Both the position numbers and the translations under genes were made by a program. Positions 6,748 to 64,000 of a DNA stretch of 64,000 bases are shown one piece after another. The DNA is taken from NCBI GenBank assembly GCA_905178155.1, contig CAJINV010000001.1:5832750-5896749 (forward strand), given 5' to 3'. The number at the start of each line of letters is the position of its first letter. The first letter of the stretch is position 1. This DNA is from Amoebophrya sp. A120 (Eukaryota > Protista > Dinoflagellata). The notes beneath the pieces were generated by a model. It searched no databases. It saw nothing but the letters and a program-made list of their open reading frames with translations, and had not been told where the DNA came from.

Positions 6748-9700
6748 ATGCCCGCGTCCAAAGCGTCCACATCCCTCGGGAGTTCTTCCACTGCTCTCAA
6801 TGCAGGTAAAAACGAGTTGCCGGCGCGGTACAACGACAGTAAGAATGTGCTTTCAACAGCGGGAGACCACGCCGAGCAGGTATCCAATGAAGAGGAGTTT
6901 AGCCAAAGTGCGGAGAAGCTGGCCAAGGCGCTGCCAGACAACTTTGGGGATGTGGTCCACCGAAAGCCCAAGAAACAACCAGCGGGGACGAGTAGTGCAG
7001 TAGCTCATTCATCGTCCAAACCCAAAGCAAAAACTACATCTGTACAAGAAAGCACTTACTACAACGGGTCGCGTTACAACAGCAACAAGTGGCCTTTCCC
7101 GCGACCCGTCTCCGACCGCTTGAGTTTCGTGAAGGAGGTGCTGCAAGTTCACGTGAAGGACCCCGTGCTGCGGAAATGGCTGGTAGACGAGGTCGTGGAG
7201 TATTCCCTGAAAATTAACCATCCCCATCCAATTTGTCATGCAAAACATGTAGTAAAATCTGTGTCTGTCATGCAAAAAGTGGATGGGGATGGTTAATTTT
7301 CAGGGGATATGGAGGTGTTCCGGACGAAGGTAAAGTCTGATCAGCAACGGGAAATGTGGAAGATGCTGAAAGACCAGCTCGACGAGCTGAACCTCGAGTT
7401 GCAGAAGCAGCTGAAAACGGCGTTCCCGGAGTGGTACCTCACCCGCGCAAAAATTCAAGTAATGATGGAGGAGGAAACGAAGTGCCGTATCCTGAGTAAA
7501 AACGTACCCACACCAGAGTTGTAATGCAGATTTGCAAAGACAGGAAGACTTGTAATGCGCATCCCCATGAGAGCCATTTCCAATCGTGTTTTGGAATTTG
7601 TGATGCTGTGAACAGGATGACCAGCTGGATTTGTGATGCGGCTGCACTTGCTAACCTGCACTACTCTGCAGAGTGTAACTTGTCATGCGTGACTCGCATC
7701 GGTCCATTTTGGCTCAAGCCATTTTGGCTCAAGACTTTGTCTTGTTGCCTGAGATCCAACAACGTAGAACAGGGGGAGCTATGCCGTAGAGTAGGATCTT
7801 CATTAATCTCTTCAGCTGCTGTTAAACCACCACTGATGCCACGTCGGTATCTCCCCCGACTCCCTGAAGCGGAGTTTCGAAAAGCCTGTAGATAAACACC
7901 CGAACGTGGCGGGTCCTCTGTGCCCCCTTTTACAGTAGTTTTAGCCAGAGCATCGGCACCCCGAGTGACCATGCGCACAAAGAACAACTAACATGTCCAC
8001 TCCACCGACAAACCGCACTGACACGGAGCCGCCGTGTACCGTCCTACATACTCTCCGAGGCACAGTAAATAGCATAGGAAAGCAAACCTCCACTCCCGGA
8101 GAGTCCGCCCCGCCGCTCCGCTGCGAGGCGAAGGAACGGCAGTCGATGTGACCGAAGGTAATCGGCGGGCCTCCTGATCCGCGCATGCTATGGTCCCGAA
8201 TAGACCAAAAACTGGACCTAAGCATCATGAAGCACGACCCAGCCAGGTAGGAGCCAGGCTTCCAGTGGTGGCGCAATCAATAAGCTGGTCGAGACGCAAG
8301 CGAATCCGCTCGTGTAGTGCAACGTCAGCAAGCCGCGGAGGCCCCTGCGCTGCGAGCTCAATGGACAGCGGCATCAAAGTGGAAGACGCCCGGTCGTCTA
8401 CCGGGCCTCCAGTTCCGCGCATGGTATGGCGCCGATCGGGCCGCGACGTCGGAGTATCGGTGCGCGTCGTGCAACGTCAGGGAGGACCCGGTGCTACGAC
8501 TAGGCACCGGACGGAGACGTGGCGAAAGACAAGCGATTCTCGTCCTTGCGGCAAAACGTCACAAACACATCGGTGGGCAGCGACTAACGCCGAAACAAAC
8601 TTGTCGTTTGCCCGCCCTGTCTGTAAAACCCATGGGCTGGGCCTTGGGACGGGTCTGGTTCGTCAGTGCCATCGGGTGAGCTCGTTGCGACGTTGGTCAG
8701 GCGGAGCTCGTTGCGCTTCGCCCGGGTGCTCCAGACCACGTGGACACGGAAGTAGCGGTATATCTCTAGCTATTTGCGATCTCTGGCTCACCTCCCCCTG
8801 CACTTTGTGCGGGCCGCAAACCCATGTTACATGTTTCACTTTGCATGCACTACTTGTGATCTCGTCCAGTTAGTAGATGAAGGACGTCTTAGAGTGTCGC
8901 TGCGTGTGCCGGGGACGGAGCACGTCCGTCCCCGCCGTCTCCCCCAAAAATGAGCCTCAGGGTGGCAGCTACAATTCGATAGCGCCTCAGCTTTTCCCGA
9001 GAATCCGCTCGTGCTGTGCATCGTCACCATTCCCACGACGGGGCCGAGCCCTAATGCGAGCTCCCGGACCAAGCTGCGGCAGACGGGCCGCCCTCTCCTT
9101 CTCTTCCGGCTACAGACATTCTGCTCATACCAGGCGGTCTAGATACGAACATGGGCCCTACGGCTAAACCGGTACCTCGGGGGCCCTCGGGGGTGCCGGT
9201 TAAGAACCCGCGCAGCCGCAGCCCACAAGGGGACCGATGCGGCTCGGAGAGAATCCGCCTCCTCGCCTCGCGCTAGGCAAACGGGCCGTCCAGTGGGGAG
9301 AAAAACGGAAAAGAGCACTACCTGCCGCGGTCGACAGCCTCTTCTCCGACTTGTTCGTCTTCAGACGCGAGGGTACGGCGGTCAGAGCGTAGGAGGAGGC
9401 CCCTCGGGGAGCCGAAAAATCCGGCCTAGGGCCGTGCCTGAGGACGAACAAAGGGTCGCGGGGCCGGTGCGCCCGACGACCAGATCGGGGAGTCCGCTCG
9501 GGTTGGGCATCGGCGGCAAGCCACGACTTCAACGCGAAGGTATTGCAGGATCGAGGGGGTTAAGACACTAGCAGACCCTGAACGGCTAGAGCGGCAGCGA
9601 CGGGTCGCCCTAGCTGACACGTAGCGGCCGGCCGCATCACCACGAACCCCAAAAAGCGCCACTGTTTAACGGTATTTGCTACCTCGGAGTGCTGCAGAAT

Positions 9701-12700
9701 TTGCTGTTTTTCGATGCTCTTGCATGTTTAGTAGCGCTGCGGTAAATTAAAAATTGAAAATTGACGGTGTTTGCAGCCTTAAAAGATGTATAGAAGCCTG
9801 AAAACGATGCCGGCGTGCACTCGGGGGCGGAGCATGTCCGTCCCCGTCGTTGCTTCAAAATAAAATCCCAGGTTGGCGTGGCTGACAGCCTCCTCCCCGG
9901 CATGCTCGCCTTCAAAAACGAGGACACGGCCACGGCGCAAACGTCCTCTTCAGTGGGGCGCAAGCAATGCACATGCACTGACTCCGCCCCTCCATGTCGC
10001 GCAGCAGGACGAGAGCCCGGACATCTCGCCGTTACTGGTGAAGGGGAAAACAATCCACGGAGTAGTCCTGTCCGTGTTAAATCTGGTGCGGTCGGCAGCC
10101 CTGCCTCCCGCCTGTTCGTCTTCAGCCACGAGGGTACGGTGGTCATAGCTCGGAAAAATGCGGCTCGTTAGACGGAAAAATCCGGCGTCAGGTCGAGTCT
10201 GGGGACGAACAAGAGCTGGGAAGCGATAACGTGCCCCCCAAGGGGGAGTTAATAATTAAGCGTCCCCCACCCACGGAATCCGCTCGTATAATGCATCGCC
10301 TGGAGAACCCGCCCCCTCGCGTTGGGTGCCGCCGATACGGTAGTCGTTTCAGCTAATGCAGCGGCTGCGGGGCACGGCAATGGGCCAGTTTGACGGTAAT
10401 TGCTACCTCGGAACGCTGCAGAACTTGCTGTGTTTCGATACTTTTGCATGGTCAGGGACGCGGCTCTAATTTAAAAATTAAAAATTCACCACGTTTTCAG
10501 CAATAATGGATGTTTACAATGCTTGAAATCTATGCCGGTGTCTCGGCGTGTACTCGGGGGCGGAGCATGTCTGTCCCCGCCGTTGCTGTAAAATATAACC
10601 CCAGGTTGAGACGCAGAGCAGGGGTGAGGACCTGCGGCGAAAGTACAATCTTCAGACACGATGGGACTCGGGCCGGAGCGCAGACAGTGATAGAGGACCC
10701 GGCAGCGGCGGCAGCAGCAGCAGCGCGGGACGATGACGACACCACAATGCCGCAACTAGTAGAACCGGCCCCGCCCCGAGCTGGACCCAAGCCGCACCGC
10801 GATCGCCGACCAGAGCCGGGCGTTCGTGCTGGCGCCGGCCCTTATCCCGGCGGGCTCGAGAACAATCCTGAGAAAGGTACATGAGGCGGCGCCGAAGCAC
10901 ATCGCGGCGGCAATTCGCGCGGCGAACGAGCACGAGCTGCTCCTGGAGCTCGGCCCGCACTGCCTCCGCATCATCCAGCGGCCGGCACACGAAGGTGAGC
11001 TAGAAGCAGACCGCACCCGCGCAGCAGGAAAGGCATTGGCGGCCGGTGTGGCGGTGCCCGGTGGGGCAAAGCGGTACAAGGAAGCAGTCCCGCTAGCCAT
11101 CTGGAGGGCAACAGGAAGCAAAGTAGGTCCTCTGGCCGGGACCTATACAAACCACCCGGACTACCGGGACATCCCCTGCAATGCTGCCGTGGTCGACGCC
11201 CTGGCGCTTCGGCAGACAGACCACGCAATTGGACTGGACCCGCGCAACCATAGCAGGCTCGCAGCGGGTACCCTGAAAAACGCGGGCGGATTTGCGGCGA
11301 ACGAGTGGCCGGCGGGGGACCCGGGAGTGAGCAGTGAGGACCCCGACATCCGCAAGTCCGATAACCCCGGCGACCGGGCAGCCGTCAAAGGAAAAGCGTT
11401 GCAGAAGCGGCTGGAGAGGGCGCCGCCCGACACACCGTTCTGGACCGGCGCCGACAAGCCGGCGCTCGGGGAGGGCGGAGAGGAGGCCATGATCTGTGCC
11501 CCGGTGCGAAAAGTCTCCCGCACCAGCATAGCGGCAAACAGACCAACGCCGCACGGCCGGAGCTGCCCAGACTGCGTCGCAGAAGCACAAGAGATGGCGA
11601 AGAACACGATGGAGGGCAACACGCTCGTCCACCCGTACCTGGCCAGTTTTCTAGCCCCAGAACGAGTGCCGCCGGCGGTCGGACCGTACGCGAACTGGTT
11701 CGGCAGTGAAGCGCCGAACCAGGAGAACATGCGCTACCCCGTATACATCCGGACGCCCGAGGTAACAGCGGGAGCATCAGCAGCAACGATATACAAATGC
11801 ACCAAGTGCGACGCGGTAGGACAGATGCCCAGCATGTTGGCGCACGTGGTTGTGTGCCGAGTGGGGCGGCATGGGCGGGTAGGCAGCATGCTGCTCGGCA
11901 AACTGAGCGCCCTGGCGGCGGGGGAGCGGGATGCGGCCACGCACCAAATAACGACGTCAAAGAAACATCACCTGGCGGAACTGCGGCTCCAGTTGGACGA
12001 GCGCCCGCCCCCGCCCGACATCGAGTGGTCCAAAGGACGGCGAATGAAGATCACACTGCTCAACTTGGATGGCGGACTTCTGACCAACTGGCCGCGCCTC
12101 GTGCATGAGATCACAGAAGCCGCCCCGCTGGTGGTCGTCGTCAGCGAAGCAGATCTCCCACAGGACCTCTCCAAAACTGTCAGCGACCTCATATACTTGA
12201 CCCTCCGGGCGCGATATTTTATCTGGAGGGGAACAAGGTCCATGGCCCTGGTGGCGCACTCCCTCCGCCCGGCAGAGCAGGCAAGGTGCACACAGATCCC
12301 GCTGGCCCCGAGTATGGCAGCAATCCTTGTGGCACACGGAGACCTAGCGGGCGAACTAGTGGCGGGATATATCCCTCCAATCACGGGGGCGACGGGCAGA
12401 GACGAAGTGATGGCGCAGCAGCAGGCGGTGCTGAGGTACCTTTCGGACGCCCCCAAGGACGCAGTCGTGGGGATCGCAGGCGACCTGAACATCAGCACGG
12501 GGTCAATAATGCTGGAACGCCCAAGGCCCAACCCGTTCCGTGCGGCCATAGCAGCTGCGGCCGAGGCGCGGGGGATGCAATCTGCCCTCCTGCCCAGCGA
12601 CGTTACCTACCCCGCAGCGGACTCCCAGCCAGATGCGTTGTTTCTCCGGCCGCACAGCCGGGAAACAGAACTGTGGACACAACTGAAGCTTCCAGAATTC

Positions 12701-15700
12701 CTGCCGGAGAACTGCGCCACGCACATGCGCATTGACTGCGAACGGGTGGCAGCCGAGGAAGACAGAGAGCGCAAAGGGGCCGAGCAACTGCCAGAGGGCC
12801 TCACGCGGCGGCGGGTCTTCCAGTGGACGAGCATGACGCAGGAGACGCTGAATAGAGTCCTCGCGCGGGCGTGCGAGGCGGCAAAATCGGCGAAGAGCTT
12901 CTCCGCCAAAACCTTGGCGCACATACTGAAAACGGAGCGGGCGCCAGTCCGTAAAGCCAAAATCCCGCCCACCCATCTGTCGTTGCTTAAAGGCGACGGC
13001 ACGCTCACAATGTCGACGCAGGAGAGCATGGAGGCCTTTCGCGTCCGCCTGTGCGAAGGGAAGCCCGCCGGCATCCAGCGCACACCGGAGGAAGAGAAAG
13101 CCGTGGCAGAACAGGCGCGAGAACTAATAGAAGGCGCGCCCTCGGTCCCCCTGGAACCCTCTCTCGATATGGCAGTGCGAGCAATGCGGCGGCTAAACGG
13201 AAACGCGGCGGCGGGAGTCGATGGTGTACCAGTCGCCCTGCTGAAGGCGAGCACGACCCTCGCCTACTTGCTCGTCACCCTGATCTGCAACGCAATCAAC
13301 GCCTTCGAGGAGCTGCCATGGAGTAAGGAGTGCTTGTTTGTCTTCCTATTCAAACACGCGAAAGCAGGGGCAACGAGATTCGTGCCGCGCTTTTGGCGTC
13401 CAATAGCCATGATCAGTGGCATCACGAAGCTAGTCGAGTCGGTGGTGCTCGGCGCGATAGAATCCCTGGTGAACGAGTTCCGGGACAACTCGGCATTCAT
13501 CAAGGGCCTCTCGCCAACGGTAGGACTCATCCGCGCCTTGATGAAGGCAATGCAGTCGCGTCGGAAGTACGTGGGAGTCGTGGTGGGCGACATAGCAGGC
13601 GGCTACGAGAGCGCCTTTGTGATCCACGTGCTGACAGTATTGAAGGAGCGGGGGGCGTCGCGCCAGATTCTCCGCGTGGTCTATCGGTGGATGTGCGGGC
13701 GAACGGGACGAATAGTACTATGCGGGCTCGTCTCGCATGCCTTCCCCCTCGGGGAAGGCCTGGGTCAGGGCACGCTCCTGTCCCCTGCCCTGTTTAGGAT
13801 CGTGGTCGAATATTGGTTGAACATAGTGGGTCTCGTCAGCGACTTGCACGACTGCATCACTGGCTTCTGCGACGAAATCGGGATCGTCGTAACGGCCGAC
13901 ACAGAAGCGGAGCTGAAGCAAAAGCTCACGGACAAAGCAGACCGCTTGCGGCGGATCCCGTACCCGATCGCTGATTGGCGCATAGCGGTTCTCAAAGCCC
14001 CGGTGCTGTCGAGTGGAACCAAGGAAGAGCAGGACGCCTTCTTCAGAAGGTTCACGGTGCGGCTCGCGAGTGGCCAGGTCCTCCGGCTCCCGGAAGTGGA
14101 GACGCAGTTGGACAGCGGGGCGGGGAAACCTCTACGGGTGGAGAGCGGCAATGGGCGTAGAATAAACAGAGCGGCCTATATCTCCGTACTGGGGGTGCCG
14201 CTATCACCACACCCAGAGGCATGGCTTGCACACCTGGGGAACCTACAGCGCAGGGTCGCAGCAGAGGCAGCGGAAGCCGCTGCAGACGAGGACAAAACAG
14301 TAGTAGAACTAATCGACCAGTACCACGCCAAGATGTTCAACTGCCTGCAATATGCCAGCTCGGTGAAGAGCATTCTCTGCCCGGGTGAGGCCCTGGCACG
14401 GCTCGACGCAGTAGCAGAAACCTGCCTCCGCAGAATGTTGCGCGTTAGCTTCACCGCCCCGGTGTACTCGACCTTCTTTAGTACGGGCGCCGTGATACCG
14501 AGTACGGCGGCACTAGCGGAGCGCAACGTGCTGAACATCCAGGCAATCGCCCTGGATAGCGATACCTTCGCACAAGAGGCAAAAGTGGAGGAAGTCTGCC
14601 CCCTGCGCCGGGAGGGGTGGACCAAGCTGCGCATCTCCCACACCCTAAAGCCCGCCGATCCGCTTCCCGACAACGTCGTCCTGCTGCCGGCTCCTGCAGT
14701 GTTCCAACGATATGGACTGAAATTCAGCAAAGAAGAAACGCCCAAGGTGGCGACGCTGGTGAAGGAGGAATTCGAAAAACTGGAAAAGCAGCTCGGCCCG
14801 GCCATGATGCTCATCGCAACGGATTCGGGCGACGTGCCGCGGTCTGCACCAGGCGCAGCGGGCCCCGGCCCCCGCAAGCGTATGGCGACAATAGTGATGA
14901 GACGGGGGGACGATCGAAAAGGGGAGTTTGCGCTTGCTGCCCGCCTTCGACATTGCCTCACAACATTCTGGGGCGAAGCGGGTGCGTTCGTCGTCTCGGT
15001 CCTCCTCCTCAGTGACAGTGTCCGGGAACCCCACGCCCCGATACACGATGACCGCCTCCGGCTAGTGCTATTCCAAGTGGACGCGTCGCCGGTGTTGGAT
15101 AACGTGCTATCGAGTAGAACGGAGCAGACCTGGCAGGAGTGCCGCCGGGCACTGATAAATCTAGCGCGAACGCGTCCGGACTGCCTCTTCCTCTGCTTCT
15201 GGACGCCCGGCCACGCGGGGATCAGTCCACACACGGAAGCCGACCTGCTACAAAAGCAGACACACCTACCAAGCGAACCGCTGGAAAGGTTCACGGACCT
15301 GCGCATACCGCTCCGACAACTCCGCGCGTACGCAAGGGCATGCCTCCGAGAGGAGATCCTGGAAGTGGTGAAGAAGCGGGCGCGGACATCAACGACGGGC
15401 GCATACCGGGGCTACATAGCCGCGGAAGTCGGCGACGCGAGGAAAACGCTGCGGGGCCTCCCGGCGGCCAGCCAGCGAATAGCCTGGAGCCTACTGTGCG
15501 GAGATGGGAGAGACGCTGCCCGGGCAAGCGACTCGCGGGTAGGCAGCTCGTGCATCAAGTGCGGGCTTTGTGGCGAAAAGGTGTCAGCCGTGATCGCGTT
15601 GTCGGTCAGCCAAGACCCCTCCCCGCCCGCGATGGACGACGAAAGCTCTTCCGGGTCGAATGGCAACGATAGCGAGCTACTTATCGACGAGGAGGAGATG

Positions 15701-18700
15701 GGGGCGATAGACACAGCGGCCGAAGAACTCGCAGGGGACGCAGACGCCCCAAAGAACACGGAGTTCGCAAACCTCGACCGCCATGTTCTTTTGTCTCACT
15801 TCGCGCGGCACGTCCTCCTGTGTGAGTGCAAGAAGATCCAAGAGGAGGTGCTGACGGTGTGCCCGGCGATACCGATACCGACCTCGCAAAACCTCCTCCG
15901 TAGACCGGACATCACAGTCCGCGCCTTCCTGACGAAGCTGGGCATGGCCCCCCCGCCCGAAGGAGAATGGCCGGTGAAACCGCGGCAGAGGCCCGACAGA
16001 GACGACGTCCCGCCGCCCGCAGAGGTGCAAGCAAACGTGAACAGAGGGGCGCAGACGTTTCGCAACATGATCGAAATGGCGGAAACGGCGCAGCCCCCGG
16101 CAAGCGCCACGCAGGAACCCAACCCACCGGTCGTTCCGCGGAACTTCGTTCCCGGGGCGGCGCACAGACTCTGCACCAGTGCGCCCGACCGAACCCAGCC
16201 CCAGGAGGGCGATGCGCAGAGCCTTCTGGACACGCTGTTTTGGATACCCCCGGACCGGCGAGCCCCAGGAACCACGACACGAGAGCGGCAGGGGCCGTAC
16301 ACGCGCCCCCAGCAGCTGGGGCACGCATCTTCCCCCCCTGGGCAACCATCGAGCAGTCCCGGCGCAATCCCCAATACCACATCAGGACGAAGCGCAACCC
16401 CGGACCAGGGTGATGAAGACCGGGCGGCCGACGCGGCAGATGACCTGGAAACGGGGCGGGCAGAAGTTTTAGCTGGCGGAGTAGTGCTGCGACTGGACCC
16501 GGTGACGGGCCTTCCCCTACCGCGAAGCGGGGGAAGCGGGGCGAACGAGGAGGGCTTGCAGGACTCGCCAGACGCCATCGCAGCTCAGGTTGCGGACCAA
16601 GACGACCTGACGATGATGGAGGAAGACGAAGACGCGCTCTATACCTAACCTGCGTGCCTACCTAAAATCGGCATGCCTACCTAAAAACTTCCTATACAGC
16701 TGGACCCAAAGGGGAGAGTCATACCATTTCTAGACCACGACCCGCCCACGGCCAAGGTTCGGGCCCGGGTCTGCGGCGGCGCCGACTGGGAGTTCCTGAC
16801 GAGCACGACGGAGAGCTCGCGAGGGAAGGAAGCGGAGTGTGGTGTAGAGAGGTTCAAGAAGATGCGCCGTAGTCGTCTGGTTCTCCTCGTAGTTCTGGTT
16901 CGCGTCTGTTTTTGGTTTTTCGCTCCGGCCCCTTGTATGACAAGATGGACTGATGAAAGAAAGGCGTGGTTGCCGCATAGTTGCAGTCGGGGAAGACTGC
17001 GAGCCTGTGTAGTTGAAGGAGCCTAGTTTCTAGCAAGAAGAGAGATGAAAGCGTATTAATCCCAAACAAAAAGAAGCGAAGATCTGCCCAGCGTCCCGCT
17101 CGTCGTGTTGCTATTTCTCGCTGCTGGGGATCTGCTCCGCGGTCTCTGCGCGCGCTCCGGAAAATGCTGTCCTTATCCCGCCGAGCGGAATCGGTAACTT
17201 CGGCGTTTTTCGCAAGGACATTTGGGCACAATCGGGTAAACAGGTCGGCGGGTCTAGGACACTAACTCAAAAAGCTGCAGCACGACCGTCAAAATGTCGC
17301 AGGAGGATCCAGTGGAAACCACGACCGTCTGTAACGCACAACACGCGGCGAGACTGTACCACCCTCCACCCGCGCGCGCCCAGCTTAGACCTAGCGCCGG
17401 AAGCGGGTTCGCCAATGTCTGCTGCTCACCCAGCCCACAGCACCCGGGGAAAAGTACGTTGCCCCGCAACAAATATGCTGTTCCACACGAATGGAGAAAT
17501 GCACGCGAAAGTAGAGCCCTGCAACTTCTGTCATGCCTGCTGAGTATTTTAGATATACCGCTAGCAGAGGGGCGGCGCTAGCCCCGTCCTCAAGCTGTAG
17601 CTGGTGTTATGTTCTGCCATCGACATCTACCTACACCTTCCGCCCTCTCGCCTGCCCACTCGCCTGCCCACTCGCCTGCCCACTCGCCTGCCCCCTCGGA
17701 CCGTTCATCAACTGCTTTGCACTTAGCACGGTATGCGCTTTTCGTCCTCGCCCTGTCACTTCTGTCATGCATGTTGCTTTGTACTAGGTTTCCGCCAGAC
17801 TCGACGGCGCGGCCTCAGGGTTTCGAATATTCGGGCAGCGATATCTACCTACATTCACCGCCCGGAGGCTGCAAGTTGCTGTCTCGTCTCGCCTGCCCCC
17901 TCGGGCCGCTCAGCAACTGCTTTGCACTTAGCACGGTATGCGCGCTTCGCCCTCGAGCCCTCCCTGCCGGGAGTCCAAGGACGTCCTCGGTACTCTCTCT
18001 GCCAAGAGCGAACTCTAACTCTCGAAATATCTGCACACCGTGCTAAGGTCAAAGCTGTTTCTGACTTATGTTCCCCTAGTGATGCTGCATTTCTCCACAA
18101 TTTTTCATCTGGATACTTTTCCCTCCTGCGCCCTGAGGACCCCGACATCCGAACCCGAGCCAGGAACCAGCCTGGCGCCACCAGTAACCCCAGCGACCTG
18201 AGTTCGCCCTACCAACCAGCATGCTGTCGCGGCTGGCGGCCGACGCCCGGTTTCACCTACGCCTCGAAGCTCCCGATCCGCAGCCGGTCTGGATGGGTTC
18301 ACGCACTTCCGATTGCCCCGATACTGCGGCAGAACCGACAGCTACCGATAGCTCCCACGCGTCGAATTCACGTGGCCACCGGGGAAAGTTTCCCGCTCGT
18401 CCTCAATGCGCAGCTGCGGCGCCCTGTCCCCGTCTTTCTACACTCTCCTCGGCGCTCCATCTAGAACTTGCTGTTGCCGAGTTTCTGAAAGATTATTCCA
18501 GATAAGCCATTCCCGGAATGAAGGGGCCGCGTTCTGCTCCCACGAGCTTTCACTTGTGCGCGTTGGGGGTAGATGTGCGTACAGCTCCTGCCTGGTCGGC
18601 TTTATCTCCGGCTGGCACTCGAAAAACTATCCTCCTAAAAGATCCACTAAATAATAGAAAACTTCGTCCATAATGAGTATGGAGATGGTCTAGCCCGCAG

Positions 18701-20931
18701 TTCCTCCTATCTGTTGCTGGTGACCTGGTCTGTTTTCTGACAATAAGTGCTGCGTCGTCTAATCTATGGGTGCGAGTAGATGTATTAGTTCCCGGCGGGT
18801 GGCTCGCAGCAATAAGGAAACTGGCAAGGATAAACATCTGTCTGTGCTTGCAATGCGCTGATGGACTGTGCTCTGCCAAATAGTGAAGTAATTTGGACTA
18901 CTCCAGTTCTGGTCCCGTTGCTGTATATTGTGCGCGGGTGCTGGGTGGAAAGGTCCAGCAATTATGTTGGTGTGTGTGTGTGCGAGGAGGAAAGTTTGGA
19001 GTGCCAGGTCCGTTGGGCCCGGGGTGGCGGCGTCTTTGGGTTGATCAAATCACCCGAAACACAATGCCACCTCGTGTTGCACAGTCTGTTTATGTCATGC
19101 GTGACTCGCAAAACTCCTAGGTTTGTGTTGCAAAATCCCCATCCTGACTCTGGTGTGGGTACGTTTTTACTCAGGATATGCCGGCTGGCGCTTCGCGCGG
19201 ACGCTGTAAAACAGAAGGAGAAACGCGCGACGGTATTATAGGAGTCTGGGTGAGGACTCATTTTCATCTCTTGTGGTATAAGTTCAATGTCCGTGGTGAT
19301 TCATTTTATGATGTCGTGCAGGTCGTTGCTGAAATGAAGAACTAAAAAACCCACAGGAGCATGCCGCGATGAAGGCTGTGGAGCAAGTGAAGATTGACCA
19401 GAGGCGGCAAAAGGCGGACCACCAACAGTCCGTACTCAACCAAATCAACAAGCACATGGAATTCCAAGGCATGATCCAGGACGCGCGGCAGAAGCTGAGC
19501 GATCTGCGGCACAACGATATCGAGAAGAAAATACGCGCGCAGTGCACCAAGTATCTCCTGAACAACCTCCTGACGACGGTGAAGGTGAAGGACCCGAACC
19601 GGTTTGCCCGCGCGCTGCTGAAGGACAAATCGCAGCGCTCCACTGGCTTGCCGAAGAATTTTGGAAAGACGAATAGTACAAAAAGTGCAGCGGTGGATTC
19701 ATTCTCGGACGAGTTTATGCTGGACTTGCTAGAAGAGGAGTTGAAGAACGTCGAAGAGAAGGACAAGGAGGCACTGCAAAAGGAGAACGAGCGCATTGTG
19801 AAGCTTTTGGAAGAAACAGGGGAGTACGAAACCCGACTCGGCGCCGCCGAGGCGAAGGTAGAGGACGCTAGTGCGGCGGTGAAGGAACAGGACAAGATTT
19901 TGGCTGCCCACGCAGCGACGATTGAGCAGCATCAGGCGACGCTGCGGGGCCTGCAGGAGGATCTGAAGACGCACCAGGAAGATGCGGCCTTTCAAGAAGC
20001 GGAAAGAAAAAAGCGAAGTGTCGCTGACGCGCGAAGATACGTGCAGGAGATGTGGGACAGGGATGCCACGTCCCAATACGAACAATGGTCGCCGGTTAGC
20101 AAGAGCATCAAGATAACAAAGAAAAAGACCTTCTTCGCGGACCTATTTGATAGCAAGCCTGCGCCAAAACGCAAGCAGGCTGGGTCGCGTCCCCCGGGCC
20201 GGCCCCCGGGCTCGAAGAAGAAGAAGAAGGACGGTGGCGGGAAAAAAGCGTTATTAACTAGCATGGAGGAGCTAGACGCGTTTATGGAGGAAGGGTTCGA
20301 TGACGCGGACAACGAGAATTCACTTTTCGCAGGCAGCAACAATTTTATCGACACGCAAACGCCCGCACTGGTCGGCGGCCAAACCGTTTTCGACCGGGAT
20401 CATGTGCAGCTGAGCAAGAGCACGGACAACTCTCTGAAGAGAGGGGACCAGCAATCTTCGAGTGGTTTTCCTTTTCCGCCGGCGAAAAAGGCAAAGATTG
20501 CCGCGAAGGAGGTGGACGAAGAAGAGATAGTCGACGAGGAGGACGACCTACTACGGGATGACGTCAAGAAGACCACATCAAAAGCGAAGAAACCAAAATC
20601 CGGCACAACTGCTGCGGCGTCTGTGCACGGTCTAAAAGTAAAGCCGTACCGAACCAAGGAGGAGAAGGCACAGCACAAAGCGGAGAAGGCAGCGCGAAAG
20701 GAGGAGCGGCGTGCCAGGCGGGAGAAACGAGCCACCAAGCGGGAGCGAAAAGCGCAGCAGCAAGGTGGTGGTAATGGTGAAGATAGTAGTACTGCGCTGG
20801 AGCAGCAGCTGCAGCCGGCGAAAGAAAAAGATGTGGGTCAAGAAGATGCAATAGATAAAGAACCAGAGGAAGAACCGAAAGACGCTTTTTTCGAAGGAGA
20901 GTGCTTTCCTCCCGAAATTGTGAGTCCGTAG
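6748..20931 (+). CDS. Hypothetical coiled-coil, K/E-rich protein; inferred exons 6748-7203, 7309-7487, 19184-19232, 19357-20931
   Basis: Removing 7204-7308 keeps the frame. Removing 7488-19183 (introner plus one TGCCG copy) gives ...ETKCR|LALRADAVKQKEKRAT in frame. GT-AG intron 19233-19356 then joins the 19369 ORF in phase 0. Confidence 0.7.
7204..7308. mobile_element. Small introner-like TIR element (~105 nt), family D
   Basis: Perfect 26-nt inverted repeat CCCTGAAAATTAACCATCCCCATCCA (7205-7230) / TGGATGGGGATGGTTAATTTTCAGGG (7280-7305). It carries an in-frame stop, the flanking ORFs are in the same frame, and it has two TGTCATGC motifs. Confidence 0.8.
7704..7733 (+). other. Two tandem dinoflagellate spliced-leader relics (CCATTTTGGCTCAAG x2)
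   Basis: Exact match to the 3' 15 nt of the dinoflagellate SL (DCCGTAGCCATTTTGGCTCAAG) at 7704-7718 and 7719-7733, 5 nt inside the left TSD. Confidence 0.92.
8300..10610 (+). repeat. Degenerate modular repeats in the LINE 5' leader
   Basis: GGAGCAYGTCYGTCCCCG at ~8917, ~9829 and ~10562. GAATCCGCTCGT at ~8302, ~9001 and ~10276. ACGGTAWTTGCTACCTCGGA...TTGCATG at ~9669 and ~10394. TGTTCGTCTTCAG...CTGRGGACGAACA at ~9351-9450 and ~10113-10211. Confidence 0.75.
10826..16648 (+). CDS. LINE polyprotein: Zn finger, AP endonuclease, reverse transcriptase, RNase H, split CCHC-like knuckle
   Basis: APE motifs KITLLNLDG, VVVSE, GYIPP, AGDLN and QPDALF. RT motifs AAGVDG, WRPIAMIS, GDIAGGYES, GLGQGTLLSPALF, FCDE and VLG. 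RNase H motifs IATDSG, GEAGA, QVDA and WTPGHAGI..EAD. Also CTKC..H...C and CGLC...HVLLCEC. True start codon uncertain. Confidence 0.9.
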   Translation: MLAPALIPAGSRTILRKVHEAAPKHIAAAIRAANEHELLLELGPHCLRIIQRPAHEGELEADRTRAAGKALAAGVAVPGGAKRYKEAVPLAIWRATGSKVGPLAGTYTNHPDYRDIPCNAAVVDALALRQTDHAIGLDPRNHSRLAAGTLKNAGGFAANEWPAGDPGVSSEDPDIRKSDNPGDRAAVKGKALQKRLERAPPDTPFWTGADKPALGEGGEEAMICAPVRKVSRTSIAANRPTPHGRSCPDCVAEAQEMAKNTMEGNTLVHPYLASFLAPERVPPAVGPYANWFGSEAPNQENMRYPVYIRTPEVTAGASAATIYKCTKCDAVGQMPSMLAHVVVCRVGRHGRVGSMLLGKLSALAAGERDAATHQITTSKKHHLAELRLQLDERPPPPDIEWSKGRRMKITLLNLDGGLLTNWPRLVHEITEAAPLVVVVSEADLPQDLSKTVSDLIYLTLRARYFIWRGTRSMALVAHSLRPAEQARCTQIPLAPSMAAILVAHGDLAGELVAGYIPPITGATGRDEVMAQQQAVLRYLSDAPKDAVVGIAGDLNISTGSIMLERPRPNPFRAAIAAAAEARGMQSALLPSDVTYPAADSQPDALFLRPHSRETELWTQLKLPEFLPENCATHMRIDCERVAAEEDRERKGAEQLPEGLTRRRVFQWTSMTQETLNRVLARACEAAKSAKSFSAKTLAHILKTERAPVRKAKIPPTHLSLLKGDGTLTMSTQESMEAFRVRLCEGKPAGIQRTPEEEKAVAEQARELIEGAPSVPLEPSLDMAVRAMRRLNGNAAAGVDGVPVALLKASTTLAYLLVTLICNAINAFEELPWSKECLFVFLFKHAKAGATRFVPRFWRPIAMISGITKLVESVVLGAIESLVNEFRDNSAFIKGLSPTVGLIRALMKAMQSRRKYVGVVVGDIAGGYESAFVIHVLTVLKERGASRQILRVVYRWMCGRTGRIVLCGLVSHAFPLGEGLGQGTLLSPALFRIVVEYWLNIVGLVSDLHDCITGFCDEIGIVVTADTEAELKQKLTDKADRLRRIPYPIADWRIAVLKAPVLSSGTKEEQDAFFRRFTVRLASGQVLRLPEVETQLDSGAGKPLRVESGNGRRINRAAYISVLGVPLSPHPEAWLAHLGNLQRRVAAEAAEAAADEDKTVVELIDQYHAKMFNCLQYASSVKSILCPGEALARLDAVAETCLRRMLRVSFTAPVYSTFFSTGAVIPSTAALAERNVLNIQAIALDSDTFAQEAKVEEVCPLRREGWTKLRISHTLKPADPLPDNVVLLPAPAVFQRYGLKFSKEETPKVATLVKEEFEKLEKQLGPAMMLIATDSGDVPRSAPGAAGPGPRKRMATIVMRRGDDRKGEFALAARLRHCLTTFWGEAGAFVVSVLLLSDSVREPHAPIHDDRLRLVLFQVDASPVLDNVLSSRTEQTWQECRRALINLARTRPDCLFLCFWTPGHAGISPHTEADLLQKQTHLPSEPLERFTDLRIPLRQLRAYARACLREEILEVVKKRARTSTTGAYRGYIAAEVGDARKTLRGLPAASQRIAWSLLCGDGRDAARASDSRVGSSCIKCGLCGEKVSAVIALSVSQDPSPPAMDDESSSGSNGNDSELLIDEEEMGAIDTAAEELAGDADAPKNTEFANLDRHVLLSHFARHVLLCECKKIQEEVLTVCPAIPIPTSQNLLRRPDITVRAFLTKLGMAPPPEGEWPVKPRQRPDRDDVPPPAEVQANVNRGAQTFRNMIEMAETAQPPASATQEPNPPVVPRNFVPGAAHRLCTSAPDRTQPQEGDAQSLLDTLFWIPPDRRAPGTTTRERQGPYTRPQQLGHASSPPGQPSSSPGAIPNTTSGRSATPDQGDEDRAADAADDLETGRAEVLAGGVVLRLDPVTGLPLPRSGGSGANEEGLQDSPDAIAAQVADQDDLTMMEEDEDALYT
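16656..16686 (+). repeat. GCCTACCTAAAA duplicated just after the LINE stop codon
   Basis: Two copies seen directly, at 16656 and 16675. Confidence 0.7.
17647..17950 (+). repeat. 12-bp tandem repeat (CTCGCCTGCCCA x~4) and ~65-bp internal duplication in the LINE 3' region
   Basis: Tandem array at 17647-17694. The segment CTCGCCTGCCCCCTCGG...CAACTGCTTTGCACTTAGCACGGTATGCGC recurs at ~17683 and ~17888. Confidence 0.8.
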
Positions 20932-61621: not shown

Positions 61622-64000
61622 ATGGAAGTAGAGGAGTTTTGTGTGTCGTTCCGGGCGGAGCGCGGGTACAAGTTTGCGCACACCTCCGCGACGGGCGCGG
61701 ATGAAATTCGGGCCTTGCGGGTGGTCGAAGCGCTGAGCTCAGGCAGTGCCGAGTCCGGAGAGGACCAACTCCGCTACCATGACTTGTTCTCGACCTTGCT
61801 GGGCGCTCTGCGCGGGCAGTCACCGGCCGAGAAGGAGCATGAAGTTCTTGCAGGTCGAGGAATTATGCCGCTCCAAGTGCCGTCGAATTCTTCAAACGGG
61901 ATCATGCAAGATGGTCAACCATCAACCGTAGCAGGGGGGGCGGGACCTACTGTAGTAATGCAGGGACCTTCACACTCGCAGTCCGGGAGTCCAGGCGACA
62001 TGATGCTGAGTCCCGGACAAGAGCAGCGGGAGGTACTATCGAGTGCAGCGGGCTCGCCGGATCAGCCCCTGCAGCGAACGCCGGACCAGCATCGGCTGCA
62101 TCCGGATGGTCATAATTTCGCCGGCTCTCCGCAGCCCAGCGCCAGTTTGTCCGCTACAAACGGCCCGCAGCAGCAACAGTCCTCTAGCGCGCACTCCCCG
62201 GACCAGCTGAATCATGCGCTAGTTCTGGCCGAGGATCAGCCGTTTGCCTTGCAACAAGGATCTGGTCATCTGCCTTTCGTGCAATTGGCCGGCCGCCGTC
62301 CACGGGTGATCGCGCCGAGGTGTGGCGACTTTATCTCTAGTAATAGACAAGTGAAGATGAACACAGCTGCAAATAACGGCCTGGCCGTCGACGTGCTGGG
62401 AGGGGTGCCAAGTTCCGTCGCAAACGCGAGCAAGTTCTCCAACAACTCCAACGCGCCGAACAAGGCGTTTCTGAGTTTCCTCGACGGGCCGCGGATCCAC
62501 ATCATCCGCAAGAACAAGCCGGTCACGTTATCCTGAGTAAAAACGTACCCACACCAGAATTGTAATGCAGATTTGCAAAGACAGGAAGACTTGTAACGCG
62601 CATCCCCATGAGAGCCATTTCCAATCGTGTTTTGGAATTTGTGATGCTGTGAGCAGGATGAGCAGATGAGTCTGTGATGCGGCTGCACTTGCTAACCTGC
62701 ACTACAGTGCAAAGCGCAACTTGTCATGCGTGACTCACAAAGCTCCTAGGGTTGTGCTGCAGAATCCCCATCCTGACTCGACGTGCTGGGAGGGGTGCCA
62801 TTGCGCCATTTTTCCAGTAGCATGCCGCTCAAGTGCCAACAGGGCGAGAGCCCTGCAAGACCGGGCTGCGAATGTAAGAAATCGGGAAAAAAATGCCGTA
62901 TACCTGCGCAATTCCTTATATGTGAATAACAAGGTGGGCGGGCGGGGTTCTTCACATTTTTGGAAACGCCCACCGCCCCGACACAAACAGTATTCTTGGA
63001 AGCGGAGGGGGGGCGCGGGACCCCCATCAAGTCGCCGCGGCGCGAAGCCGCAAATCCTTGGGCCACGTCTACCACCAGAAGTATTCCGCCCGGGGGCCGC
63101 TCCATGAGTCCATGAGTCCAAAAAAAAAATGGGGGCCGGGCAAAAAAAAAAAAAAATCCCCATCCTGACTCTGGTGTGGGTACGTTTTTACTCAGGATAC
63201 ACGTACTTGCTCGACATCCAGGATTTTTCCTGCGCGGATTGGCAACCCAACTGCCGAACAGGGACGCTGGCACTCAGCGCCGGCTCGCACGTGTTCCTCT
63301 TTCGGTTGAACCTCTTTCACGACAGTCTCGAGCAAATTGCGCAGTTTCGGCTGCCCAGCAACCGGCGGGTGCTGGACTTGAAGTGGTCGCCGGACGGGAG
63401 GAGACTGCTGGCCGTGGACTTCTTCGGCCACTACCATGTCTGGGAGCACGCATCGCGGTTGCAACGACCCATCACGCTGAAACCGCCACTGAAGGGCGTG
63501 CTGGCGGGACCTATATCCTGGTTGAGCAGCAAATTTTCGAAGAAAAATAAAAAAGGTGCAACATCATCTTCTGCAAAGAAGAACGACAGCGACAATAATG
63601 CAGCGGCGGAGAGAAATAAAAACTCTTCGGCCACTACTGGCGCTCCAGTATCGCAAATACTGTGGAACCCGGAAGGCAACATGTTCTGCGGGTTCTCGGA
63701 CAGTGGGCACCTGGAAATTTGGGACGCGGTCAGGTACGAGCGCGTGTTCGAAATGAGCGACTTGGATTTGAAGCCGCGGATCGCCGGAAACGTGCCCCAG
63801 CGAGGCAGCTTCGTGTTCGGGTTAGAAGGCGAAGAAGGCGGGAACATGTATGAGGTAAGAAACAGAGGCAGCACTTATGTCTCAATATGCTTTTTTTCTT
63901 CGTCAATGAATCAGCATGTGTGATTTAGTTCACATTTATCGTGACACCCAAACAATCAACCAAACCCATCACCAGGTTCCGTGGCGACTCCGTGACATGC
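61622..64000 (+). CDS. WD40-repeat protein, possibly Aladin/AAAS-like; inferred exons 61622-62528, 63205-63854, 63976->end (3'-partial)
   Basis: Removing 62529-63204 gives KPVT|YLLDIQDF in frame. WD blades DWQPN..LAL, LKWSPDGRRLLA..HVWE and ILWNPEG..LEIWD. Confidence 0.65.
62529..63199. mobile_element. Introner family A copy 2 (279 bp: 62529-62779 plus 63172-63199), split by a short retro-insertion
   Basis: Same TIR as copy 1 with one substitution. 5-bp TSD CACGT at 62524-62528 and 63200-63204. Reconstructed length is identical at 279 bp. Confidence 0.93.
62780..63154 (+). mobile_element. SINE-like or 5'-truncated retroposon (375 bp) with poly(A) tail
   Basis: 17-bp TSD AATCCCCATCCTGACTC at 62763-62779 and 63155-63171. 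Ends in an A15 run (63142-63156) preceded by an A10 run. The equivalent site in copy 1 is empty. Confidence 0.85.

Follow-up and report, generated by a model that had tools for sequence, protein, structure and literature searches.

A long interspersed nuclear element (LINE) in the genome of the dinoflagellate Amoebophrya sp. A120 begins with two tandem units of the dinoflagellate spliced leader (SL), and this 30-nt tandem is probably a DNA copy of the 5′ end of an SL-bearing retroelement RNA, heading an insert that would be a leader::LINE hybrid delivered in a single insertion. The element lies in a stretch of 64,000 nucleotides (assembly GCA_905178155.1, contig CAJINV010000001.1, positions 5,832,750 to 5,896,749 of the forward strand), hereafter the window, whose own numbering is used unless another contig is given. 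[quoted passage not shown] Tandem Repeats Finder (TRF) reports a period of 15, 2.0 copies and a 100% match. The tandem begins 5 nt inside an 18-nt target-site duplication (TSD) and has the same sense as the reverse transcriptase (RT) open reading frame (ORF, 10763-16648, +), so the description in the initial annotation, of two tandem SL relics just within the left TSD and in the sense of pol, holds. Across the 115.5-Mb assembly the 15-mer is present 73 times and its reversed control not once; the 15+15 arrangement occurs a single time genome-wide. The first five nucleotides of the insert, TCGGT (7699-7703), are a degenerate remnant of SL positions 1-7, for which most other copies read TCCGTAG, and the irregularity could be due to a mistake of the RT close to the template RNA's 5′ end or to later mutation.

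In the account of Slamovits and Keeling, as relayed in the discussion of relics in PMC3229502, relics of 15 nt, cut after SL position 7, are left when an SL-bearing retrocopy is transcribed and then trans-spliced again at the AG internal to the SL. The window tandem has this form and stands where such a relic is expected, at the 5′ boundary of a retro-inserted unit. The exact 15-mer at 7704-7718 would be the 3′ part of the newest SL and that at 7719-7733, by the relic rule of PMC3229502, what a cut at the internal AG left of an SL in the parent DNA copy. A relic therefore implies at least two SL additions with a DNA stage between them, and the tandem is the clearest single piece of evidence we have, suggesting that the RNA of the element passed twice through trans-splicing, with copying into DNA and renewed transcription in between. 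The earlier proposal that it marks a re-trans-spliced retrocopy with at least two rounds behind it is thus sustained by an SL followed by a 15-nt relic cut at the internal AG. Tandem SLs are found at 3 of about 33 SL sites, the other two being locus L046 (22+22) and locus L018 (22+8+22). In L046 (C14:~388,183-388,219, minus) two complete 22-nt SLs in tandem head a 1.27-kb element with a 20-nt TSD; in L018 (C3:6,453,581-6,453,624) two SLs with 8 nt between them are followed by an ORF of at least 477 aa.

The insert extends from 7699 to 19092 (11,394 nt), ends in ...CAGTCTGTTTA and has no poly(A). It is bounded by exact copies of the TSD TGTCATGCGTGACTCGCA at 7681-7698 and 19093-19110 (both +), and sits within an element of the terminal inverted repeat (TIR) introner or miniature inverted-repeat transposable element (MITE) type, of which the left arm (TATCCTGAG...) occupies 7488-7698 and the right arm, ending ...CTCAGGATA, 19093-19178, both on the + strand. 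This introner belongs to an abundant repeat family, intact copies of which are loci L050-L061, and the family is of the kind published as introner elements (PMC7789003). Within the left arm, 7600-7698 resembles a very abundant genomic repeat at 94-97% identity (1413 candidates in a first look). The introner has a 33-nt inverted terminal repeat (7487-7519 and 19147-19178) and a 5-bp host TSD of its own, TGCCG, at 7483-7487 and 19179-19183 (+), the left copy coinciding with the end of the host exon at 7487; occupied, it spans 7488-19178, and its unoccupied size is ~280 nt. Nine unoccupied introner copies read continuously across the insertion site (...AACTTGTCATGCGTGACTC[A/G]CAAAACTCC...), and these empty sites, taken with the TSD, prove the insertion boundaries. 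The TSD, the empty sites, the lack of terminal repeats of its own and the existence of 5′-truncated copies are together what is expected of a LINE insertion.

Two close copies of the RT element, C5 and C11, are inserted in the same introner at the same nucleotide. The window copy, C5 and C11 each carry a private base (G, C and A) at one TSD position, which matches between their left and right TSD copies, and identity to the window of their introner arms (86% for C5, 94% for C11) does not follow that of their LINE sequence (97.4% and 90.5%). The three are therefore independent insertions at one nucleotide, and the private TSD variants and discordant identities rule out that the three RT copies moved as DNA within a composite MITE. 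The site specificity extends beyond them, as loci L008, L058 and L049 are also inserted at this introner site, L049 and L058 both at TGTCATGCG and L008, which belongs to a different SL family, at exactly the window's insertion nucleotide. Seven of the 33 distinct SL sites fall in this one introner family, which by our estimate makes up ~0.3% of the genome. The target is thus introner sequence, AACT^TGTCATGCGTGACTC, and its flanks hold no SL gene of the kind that SLACS, CZAR and CRE enter. A second introner of the same family, at 62529-63200 of the window, carries a 377-nt insertion (62780-63156) that ends in A15, has a 15-nt TSD, TCCCCATCCTGACTC (62765-62779 and 63157-63171), and lacks a 5′ SL; this is a poly(A)-type retro-insertion at an introner site different from that of the LINE.

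Directly after the tandem comes a conserved 5′ leader of ~280 nt (7734-8009, +) which is common to 20 other retro-insertions, in all subfamilies to about 7938. A 29-mer within it, TAGAAYAGGGGGAGCTATGCCGTAGAGTA (7765-7793), has 21 genomic copies, all exact even though two mismatches were permitted, in surroundings that diverge by 15-20% between subfamilies. The 29-mer itself contains CCGTAG, the start of the SL. Counting of SL relics at the 5′ ends of other copies, which the initial annotation had proposed, places an SL 15-mer or more directly upstream of the leader in 13 of the 21 copies. Nineteen of the 21 were readable (in the wider census, 33 distinct sites of the 73 SL matches); a full or tandem SL is present in ten of them besides the window, one more keeps ~17 nt, five end within the SL with 10-12 nt left, and three end 20-40 nt into the leader. 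No homology was found upstream of the SL in any readable leader copy, and in four subfamilies, each compared within itself, the first SL base is where the copies become homologous. This series of truncations, which runs into the SL and never beyond it, identifies the SL as the 5′ end of the copied RNA; as judged from these alignments, it is the exact 5′ end of the reverse-transcribed element RNA. Several leader copies have clear TSDs, of 11-40 nt. Unusually long TSDs of ~39-40 nt flank the SL-headed insertions L025/L047 and L029.

The invariance of the leader points to a signal at the level of sequence, because no RNA family, no unusual stability and almost no covariation attach to it. At E≤1 over 7000-18500 the leader matches no Rfam family, and no Rfam match to a self-cleaving ribozyme, hepatitis delta virus (HDV)-like or other, was obtained at that threshold in that interval; its fold is of ordinary stability (z-score -0.27), and covariation in 1 of 44 pairs of its consensus fold makes no case for a structured RNA. 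Base pairing is possible between the SL's 3′ half (GGCTCAAG) and leader nucleotides 8-18, which would enclose the SL/leader junction (7726-7750, columns 7-31 of alignment A2), and covariation is seen in the pair beside that junction (G-C in 8 sequences and A-U in 5), a weak signal that may reflect one event between subfamilies. Two metagenome scans gave no matches to the SL+leader junction or to the leader 29-mer.

Families without the leader are headed by the SL as well, the D family, L003 and L029 among them. In L003 a full SL is followed by a 55-nt untranslated region (UTR) and an ORF1-like ORF (at least 480 aa), and 5.9 kb downstream, on the same strand, is an RT that shares 50% identity with that of the window; the SL sites linked to an RT, known by their coordinates, are at C1:4.72 Mb, C1:5.01 Mb and C6:2.85 Mb. 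A search of the genome against itself found no RT match near 19 of the 21 leader copies, which we take to be non-autonomous for this reason. L049 (~1.45 kb, with the leader behind a truncated SL) and L058 both finish in a tail of ~130 nt that has 87-91% identity to the tail of the window LINE, L008 shares the window tail in part, and the tail shared with the non-autonomous SL+leader elements ends in TGTTTA. Because SL elements share both its tail and its target site, the LINE family of the window is a good candidate for the mobiliser of the non-autonomous SL+leader elements. A separate SL-headed locus, L010 (C1:~13,503,750, minus), has a full SL relic 110 nt ahead of a 276-aa ORF with a DUF4386 domain and, 23 nt further on, an older degenerate SL-like stretch, CCGTAGCCTTTCTGGAAG; it is a candidate for a retrogene made from an ordinary gene and tagged with the SL.

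The coding part of the window insert shows that its SL head is joined to an incomplete LINE. The ORF2 region (10688-16648, +) is common to C5 and C11, which align to the window over 10688-17305/17325 and then again up to 19178, yet both lack the SL and the 7734-8300 sequence. C11 has instead a separate 3.0-kb 5′ region, starting 123 nt before a basic 583-aa ORF1 and including the ORF2 start codon, ~154 nt upstream of the point where homology to the window begins; C5 is a 5′ truncation of this form, and its remnant is the sole match to the C11 5′ region elsewhere in the genome. The ORF2 start codon and about 51 codons are missing from the window copy relative to C5 and C11, a 1-nt difference near 10775 shifts its frame, and there is no ORF above 227 aa in 7699-10825, hence no ORF1, which among the three copies is found in C11 only. 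The coding capacity of a complete element, ORF1 and an ORF2 with its start, is therefore lacking here. What precedes ORF2 is a 5′ body unique in the genome (8010-10687, +), with no long ORF and about three degenerate repeats of 730-900 nt; each repeat contains once a GC hairpin motif, CGGGGGCGGAGCATGTCCGTCCCCGCCGT (8910-8938, 9822-9850 and 10555-10583), a motif that also occurs in the SL-headed elements L007 and L033-L037. The 3′ UTR covers 16649-19092 (+), its last ~150 nt (18944-19092), ending ...CAGTCTGTTTA, being the tail. An 814-nt stretch of it (17306-18119) is missing from C5 and, but for its first ~120 nt, present in C11 (from 17429 onward), and holds a 12-nt tandem repeat (17642-17698) and an internal duplication of 205-235 nt.

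The window copy is accordingly best read as a leader::LINE hybrid and not as a canonical full-length element, one that may have arisen by template switching, by recombination or by read-through from an upstream leader element. A nested SL element in front of a truncated LINE finds no support, as there is neither a tail nor a second TSD at about 10687. The initial annotation had considered the insertion full length and had itself pointed to the other copies as the place where that view might fail; those copies indeed lack the SL and 7734-8300, the window copy is frameshifted and has neither ORF1 nor the ORF2 start, and for this RT family the claim has to be given up. Its broader idea of SL-headed elements survives, in that the SL does mark the 5′ end of copied RNAs, with the copy on which the idea was founded being a rearranged and not a complete element.

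The open frame of ORF2 (10763-16648, 1961 codons) has the domain order endonuclease of the endonuclease/exonuclease/phosphatase (EEP)-like kind, RT, RNase H and cysteine motif. The RT scores 31.3 bits against Pfam RVT_1 (cut-off 29.6), as an RT of the class without long terminal repeats (non-LTR) should, and the best matches of its fingers and palm in the Protein Data Bank (PDB) are R2 and LINE-1 ORF2p; it was the only region of ORF2 found by the PDB profile search. Pfam returned nothing for the endonuclease, RNase H, N-terminal or C-terminal segments. The endonuclease region nevertheless keeps N16, E44, Y118, D156/N158, D195 and H236 in an alignment with two distant eukprot homologues, and its top ESM-Atlas neighbours are all Exo_endo_phos (score 0.95), making an AP-type (EEP-like) endonuclease N-terminal to the RT probable. 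The segment after the RT has RNase H neighbours. Homologues of ORF2 are few, three among 5.8 billion proteins, and the genome holds, in addition to the close copies C5 and C11, four more distant RT copies that are intact.

In its host, the introner appears to be intronic. An RNA-derived contig (run X1) aligns over 7310-7487 and departs exactly at 7487, the end of the host exon, which is consistent with excision of introner and insert together as one intron (a 6-kb stretch was compared, the landing site lying outside it). The same contig has spliced out a 114-nt non-canonical intron (TG..TA) at 7196-7309, probably a palindromic introner hairpin, within which 7209-7302 gives sub-threshold Rfam matches to mir-7445 on both strands. 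By the purine skew of their upstream flank, SL-headed insertions mostly lie in the sense of host transcription, the skew being positive at 27 of 32 loci; within the window this proxy gave the right sign in 33 of 36 bins. Over the window (1-64000) nearly all ORFs of at least 220 aa outside the LINE are on the + strand, in one co-oriented gene block.

The sequence shows a single insertion, of the kind made by target-primed reverse transcription, at the preferred nucleotide of the TIR introner, from an RNA that began with an SL and an SL relic. We propose that the agent was a non-LTR retrotransposon of the apurinic/apyrimidinic endonuclease (APE) type and that this one event yielded both the 18-nt TSD and the 11,394-nt insert. 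The template RNA would have run, 5′ to 3′, from a new SL through the 15-nt relic, the ~280-nt leader, the 2.7-kb non-coding body and ORF2 from about codon 52 to the LINE 3′ tail. The parent DNA copy would already have been headed by an SL, and its transcript trans-spliced again at the AG inside that SL. That parent copy, we infer, was transcribed from upstream, probably within a host pre-mRNA, and then trans-spliced; transcription from upstream agrees with the sense bias of SL-headed insertions, and if a host read-through transcript receives the SL by trans-splicing, the element would need no promoter. In most copies, which carry a single SL, the AG at the end of the relic (...CTCAAG) would have been used and the old SL exactly replaced, the window tandem reflecting the rarer use of the internal AG.

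Other readings of the same features deserve weight in different degrees. The SL and leader might be the native 5′ end of the LINE lineage, C11 and C5 being plain 5′ truncations and the leader elements internal-deletion derivatives. Leader and ~130-nt tail are both common to the non-autonomous elements and the window element, as is usual for deletion derivatives; C5 is plainly a truncated C11-like form, C11 starts 123 nt before ORF1 without a defined 5′ module, and a second leader copy (C1:5017013, minus) has a further intact RT 9.8 kb downstream of it in the same orientation. We nevertheless think this rather unlikely, as the window copy, without ORF1 and with its LINE junction inside ORF2 about 154 nt past the C5/C11 start codon, is rearranged whatever its native head was, the related SL-headed LINE L003 has no leader, and 19 of 21 leader copies have no RT match nearby. 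More doubtful is that the SL is simply inherited as DNA, with an internal promoter in the leader starting transcription at or near the first SL base, so that trans-splicing would play no normal part and the tandem would be accidental. Its attraction is that the leader blocks are invariant in all 21 copies, as are LINE internal promoters and the trypanosomatid Pr77 in what PMC8190864 and PMC1874656 say of them, that tandem SLs occur at just 3 of about 33 sites, and that the leader RNA is not unusually stable. Against this, the SL heads quite different downstream sequences (the D family, L003, L029, others) and is hence not tied to the leader, the three tandem cases indicate that SLs are added onto SL-bearing RNAs and that such RNAs are mobilised, and trans-splicing at the terminal AG of the relic would regenerate a single SL just as well.

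Two accounts would deprive the tandem of its meaning. It is quite improbable that the 15+15 repeat came about after insertion, by replication slippage or local duplication, and so says nothing of rounds of retrotransposition: the two units are identical and adjacent and the TCGGT before them is irregular, as such an origin would allow, but the duplicated unit runs precisely from the internal AG of the SL to its last base, the register of re-trans-splicing (PMC3229502), and slippage in any other register would have given a different sequence. That the motif is a fragment of an SL RNA gene or a chance match we regard as scarcely credible. SL RNA genes do contain the same sequence; the 73 genomic matches against none for the reversed control, the AC, GC or AT found after the SL where a GT donor never is, the position of the motif at the TSD junction and the truncation series running into it all speak otherwise.

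Our preferred reading, of an RNA-derived SL tandem on a hybrid insert, has weaknesses of its own. No reads on 7788-12900 were present in three raw RNA runs and one contig run, the organism being barely represented in the raw runs, and no SL-bearing transcript of any element copy was seen in runs in which the organism is hardly present. The insert opens on TCGGT, which is no clean SL start, and the search for a parent of the 2.7-kb body (8010-10687) across the assembly found none. The endonuclease fold is unconfirmed, Pfam having given nothing and AlphaFold, from a 5-row alignment, an unusable model (predicted local distance difference test score, pLDDT, of 33). There are three RT copies only, and C11 may be 5′-truncated by about 300 nt, in which case the leader is possibly native; the invariant blocks of the leader, lastly, could be an internal promoter that re-transcribes an inherited SL.

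More widely, and as a tentative proposal, the SL-headed elements could form a guild of LINEs and non-coding retroposons that have no transcription start of their own, home to introners in the sense orientation, are transcribed within host pre-mRNA and are released and capped by the SL, the same RT-endonuclease making the SL retrogenes of dinoflagellates. In such a guild the SL relic that an element carries would itself be the acceptor, its terminal AG giving a single SL and its internal AG a tandem. In the literature that we searched, SL relics are described for genes, and elements with an RT appear solely as the presumed mediators; no account of retrotransposons beginning with the SL was found there. 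PMC12014239 writes that retrotransposons "may" mediate retroposition in dinoflagellates and does not rule out retroviruses. Dinoflagellate genomes are full of SL-tagged retrogenes, and here the tag is on the mobile elements themselves, whose RT, tail, TSD and target can be defined in a genome small enough (115 Mb) for all copies to be inspected, linking enzyme, preferred RNAs and SL mark in one system. The window contributes two things, a tandem relic carried by a mobile element and a leader module physically fused to a LINE with an RT. The arrangement suggests how a retrotransposon could manage with no promoter and do no harm, by lodging in an intron-forming transposon that is removed by host splicing.

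The nearest parallel is with the DinoSL relic retrogenes (PMC3229502, PMC6050394, PMC12014239), which are described as having, like the window, a 22-nt SL and then tandem 15-nt relics cut at the internal AG, at their 5′ end. Each relic stands for one cycle of trans-splicing and retroposition (Slamovits and Keeling 2008, as summarised in PMC3229502). Unlike those genes, what is tagged here is a family of mobile elements, comprising LINEs and the non-autonomous elements that accompany them, and these have TSDs, defined tails and a favoured target; in those papers retrotransposons figure solely as the presumed RT source. The trypanosomatid ingi/L1Tc elements and RIME/NARTc/SIDER resemble ours in living in a host that trans-splices SLs and in having a short conserved 5′ module common to LINEs and non-autonomous retroposons; trypanosomatid LINEs are APE-type with an RNase H, as ours probably are. 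The trypanosomatid Pr77 also encodes an HDV-like ribozyme. As described in PMC1874656, Pr77 is an internal promoter that gives unspliced transcripts, and that description sets it apart from the Amoebophrya elements, which start with the SL itself and have no Rfam ribozyme match.

Repeated, independent hits on one nucleotide of a multicopy target are the habit of R1 and R2 in ribosomal DNA, of Tx1, of Utopia in U2 small nuclear RNA genes and of SLACS, CZAR and CRE in SL RNA genes, and these site-specific non-LTR elements likewise show 5′ truncation, a defined 3′ end and no LTRs. The target here is a TIR introner in host introns and not an RNA gene, and the endonuclease appears APE/EEP-like and not restriction-like; SLACS, CZAR and CRE insert into SL genes, whereas the elements described here carry the SL on their own RNA. 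Mammalian L1 with its SINE (short interspersed nuclear element) and SVA partners shares the form of ORF2 (RT with a probable APE in our case), L1 ORF2p being among the best PDB matches, as well as variable TSDs (11-40 nt here), non-coding partners that would be mobilised in trans and the swapping of 5′ UTR modules, and the body of degenerate monomers in the window resembles mouse L1 5′ UTRs. The Amoebophrya elements differ from L1 in having no poly(A) and a specific ~130-nt tail ending TGTTTA, and in a 5′ end that would be set not, as in L1, by an internal RNA polymerase II promoter but by a trans-spliced leader.

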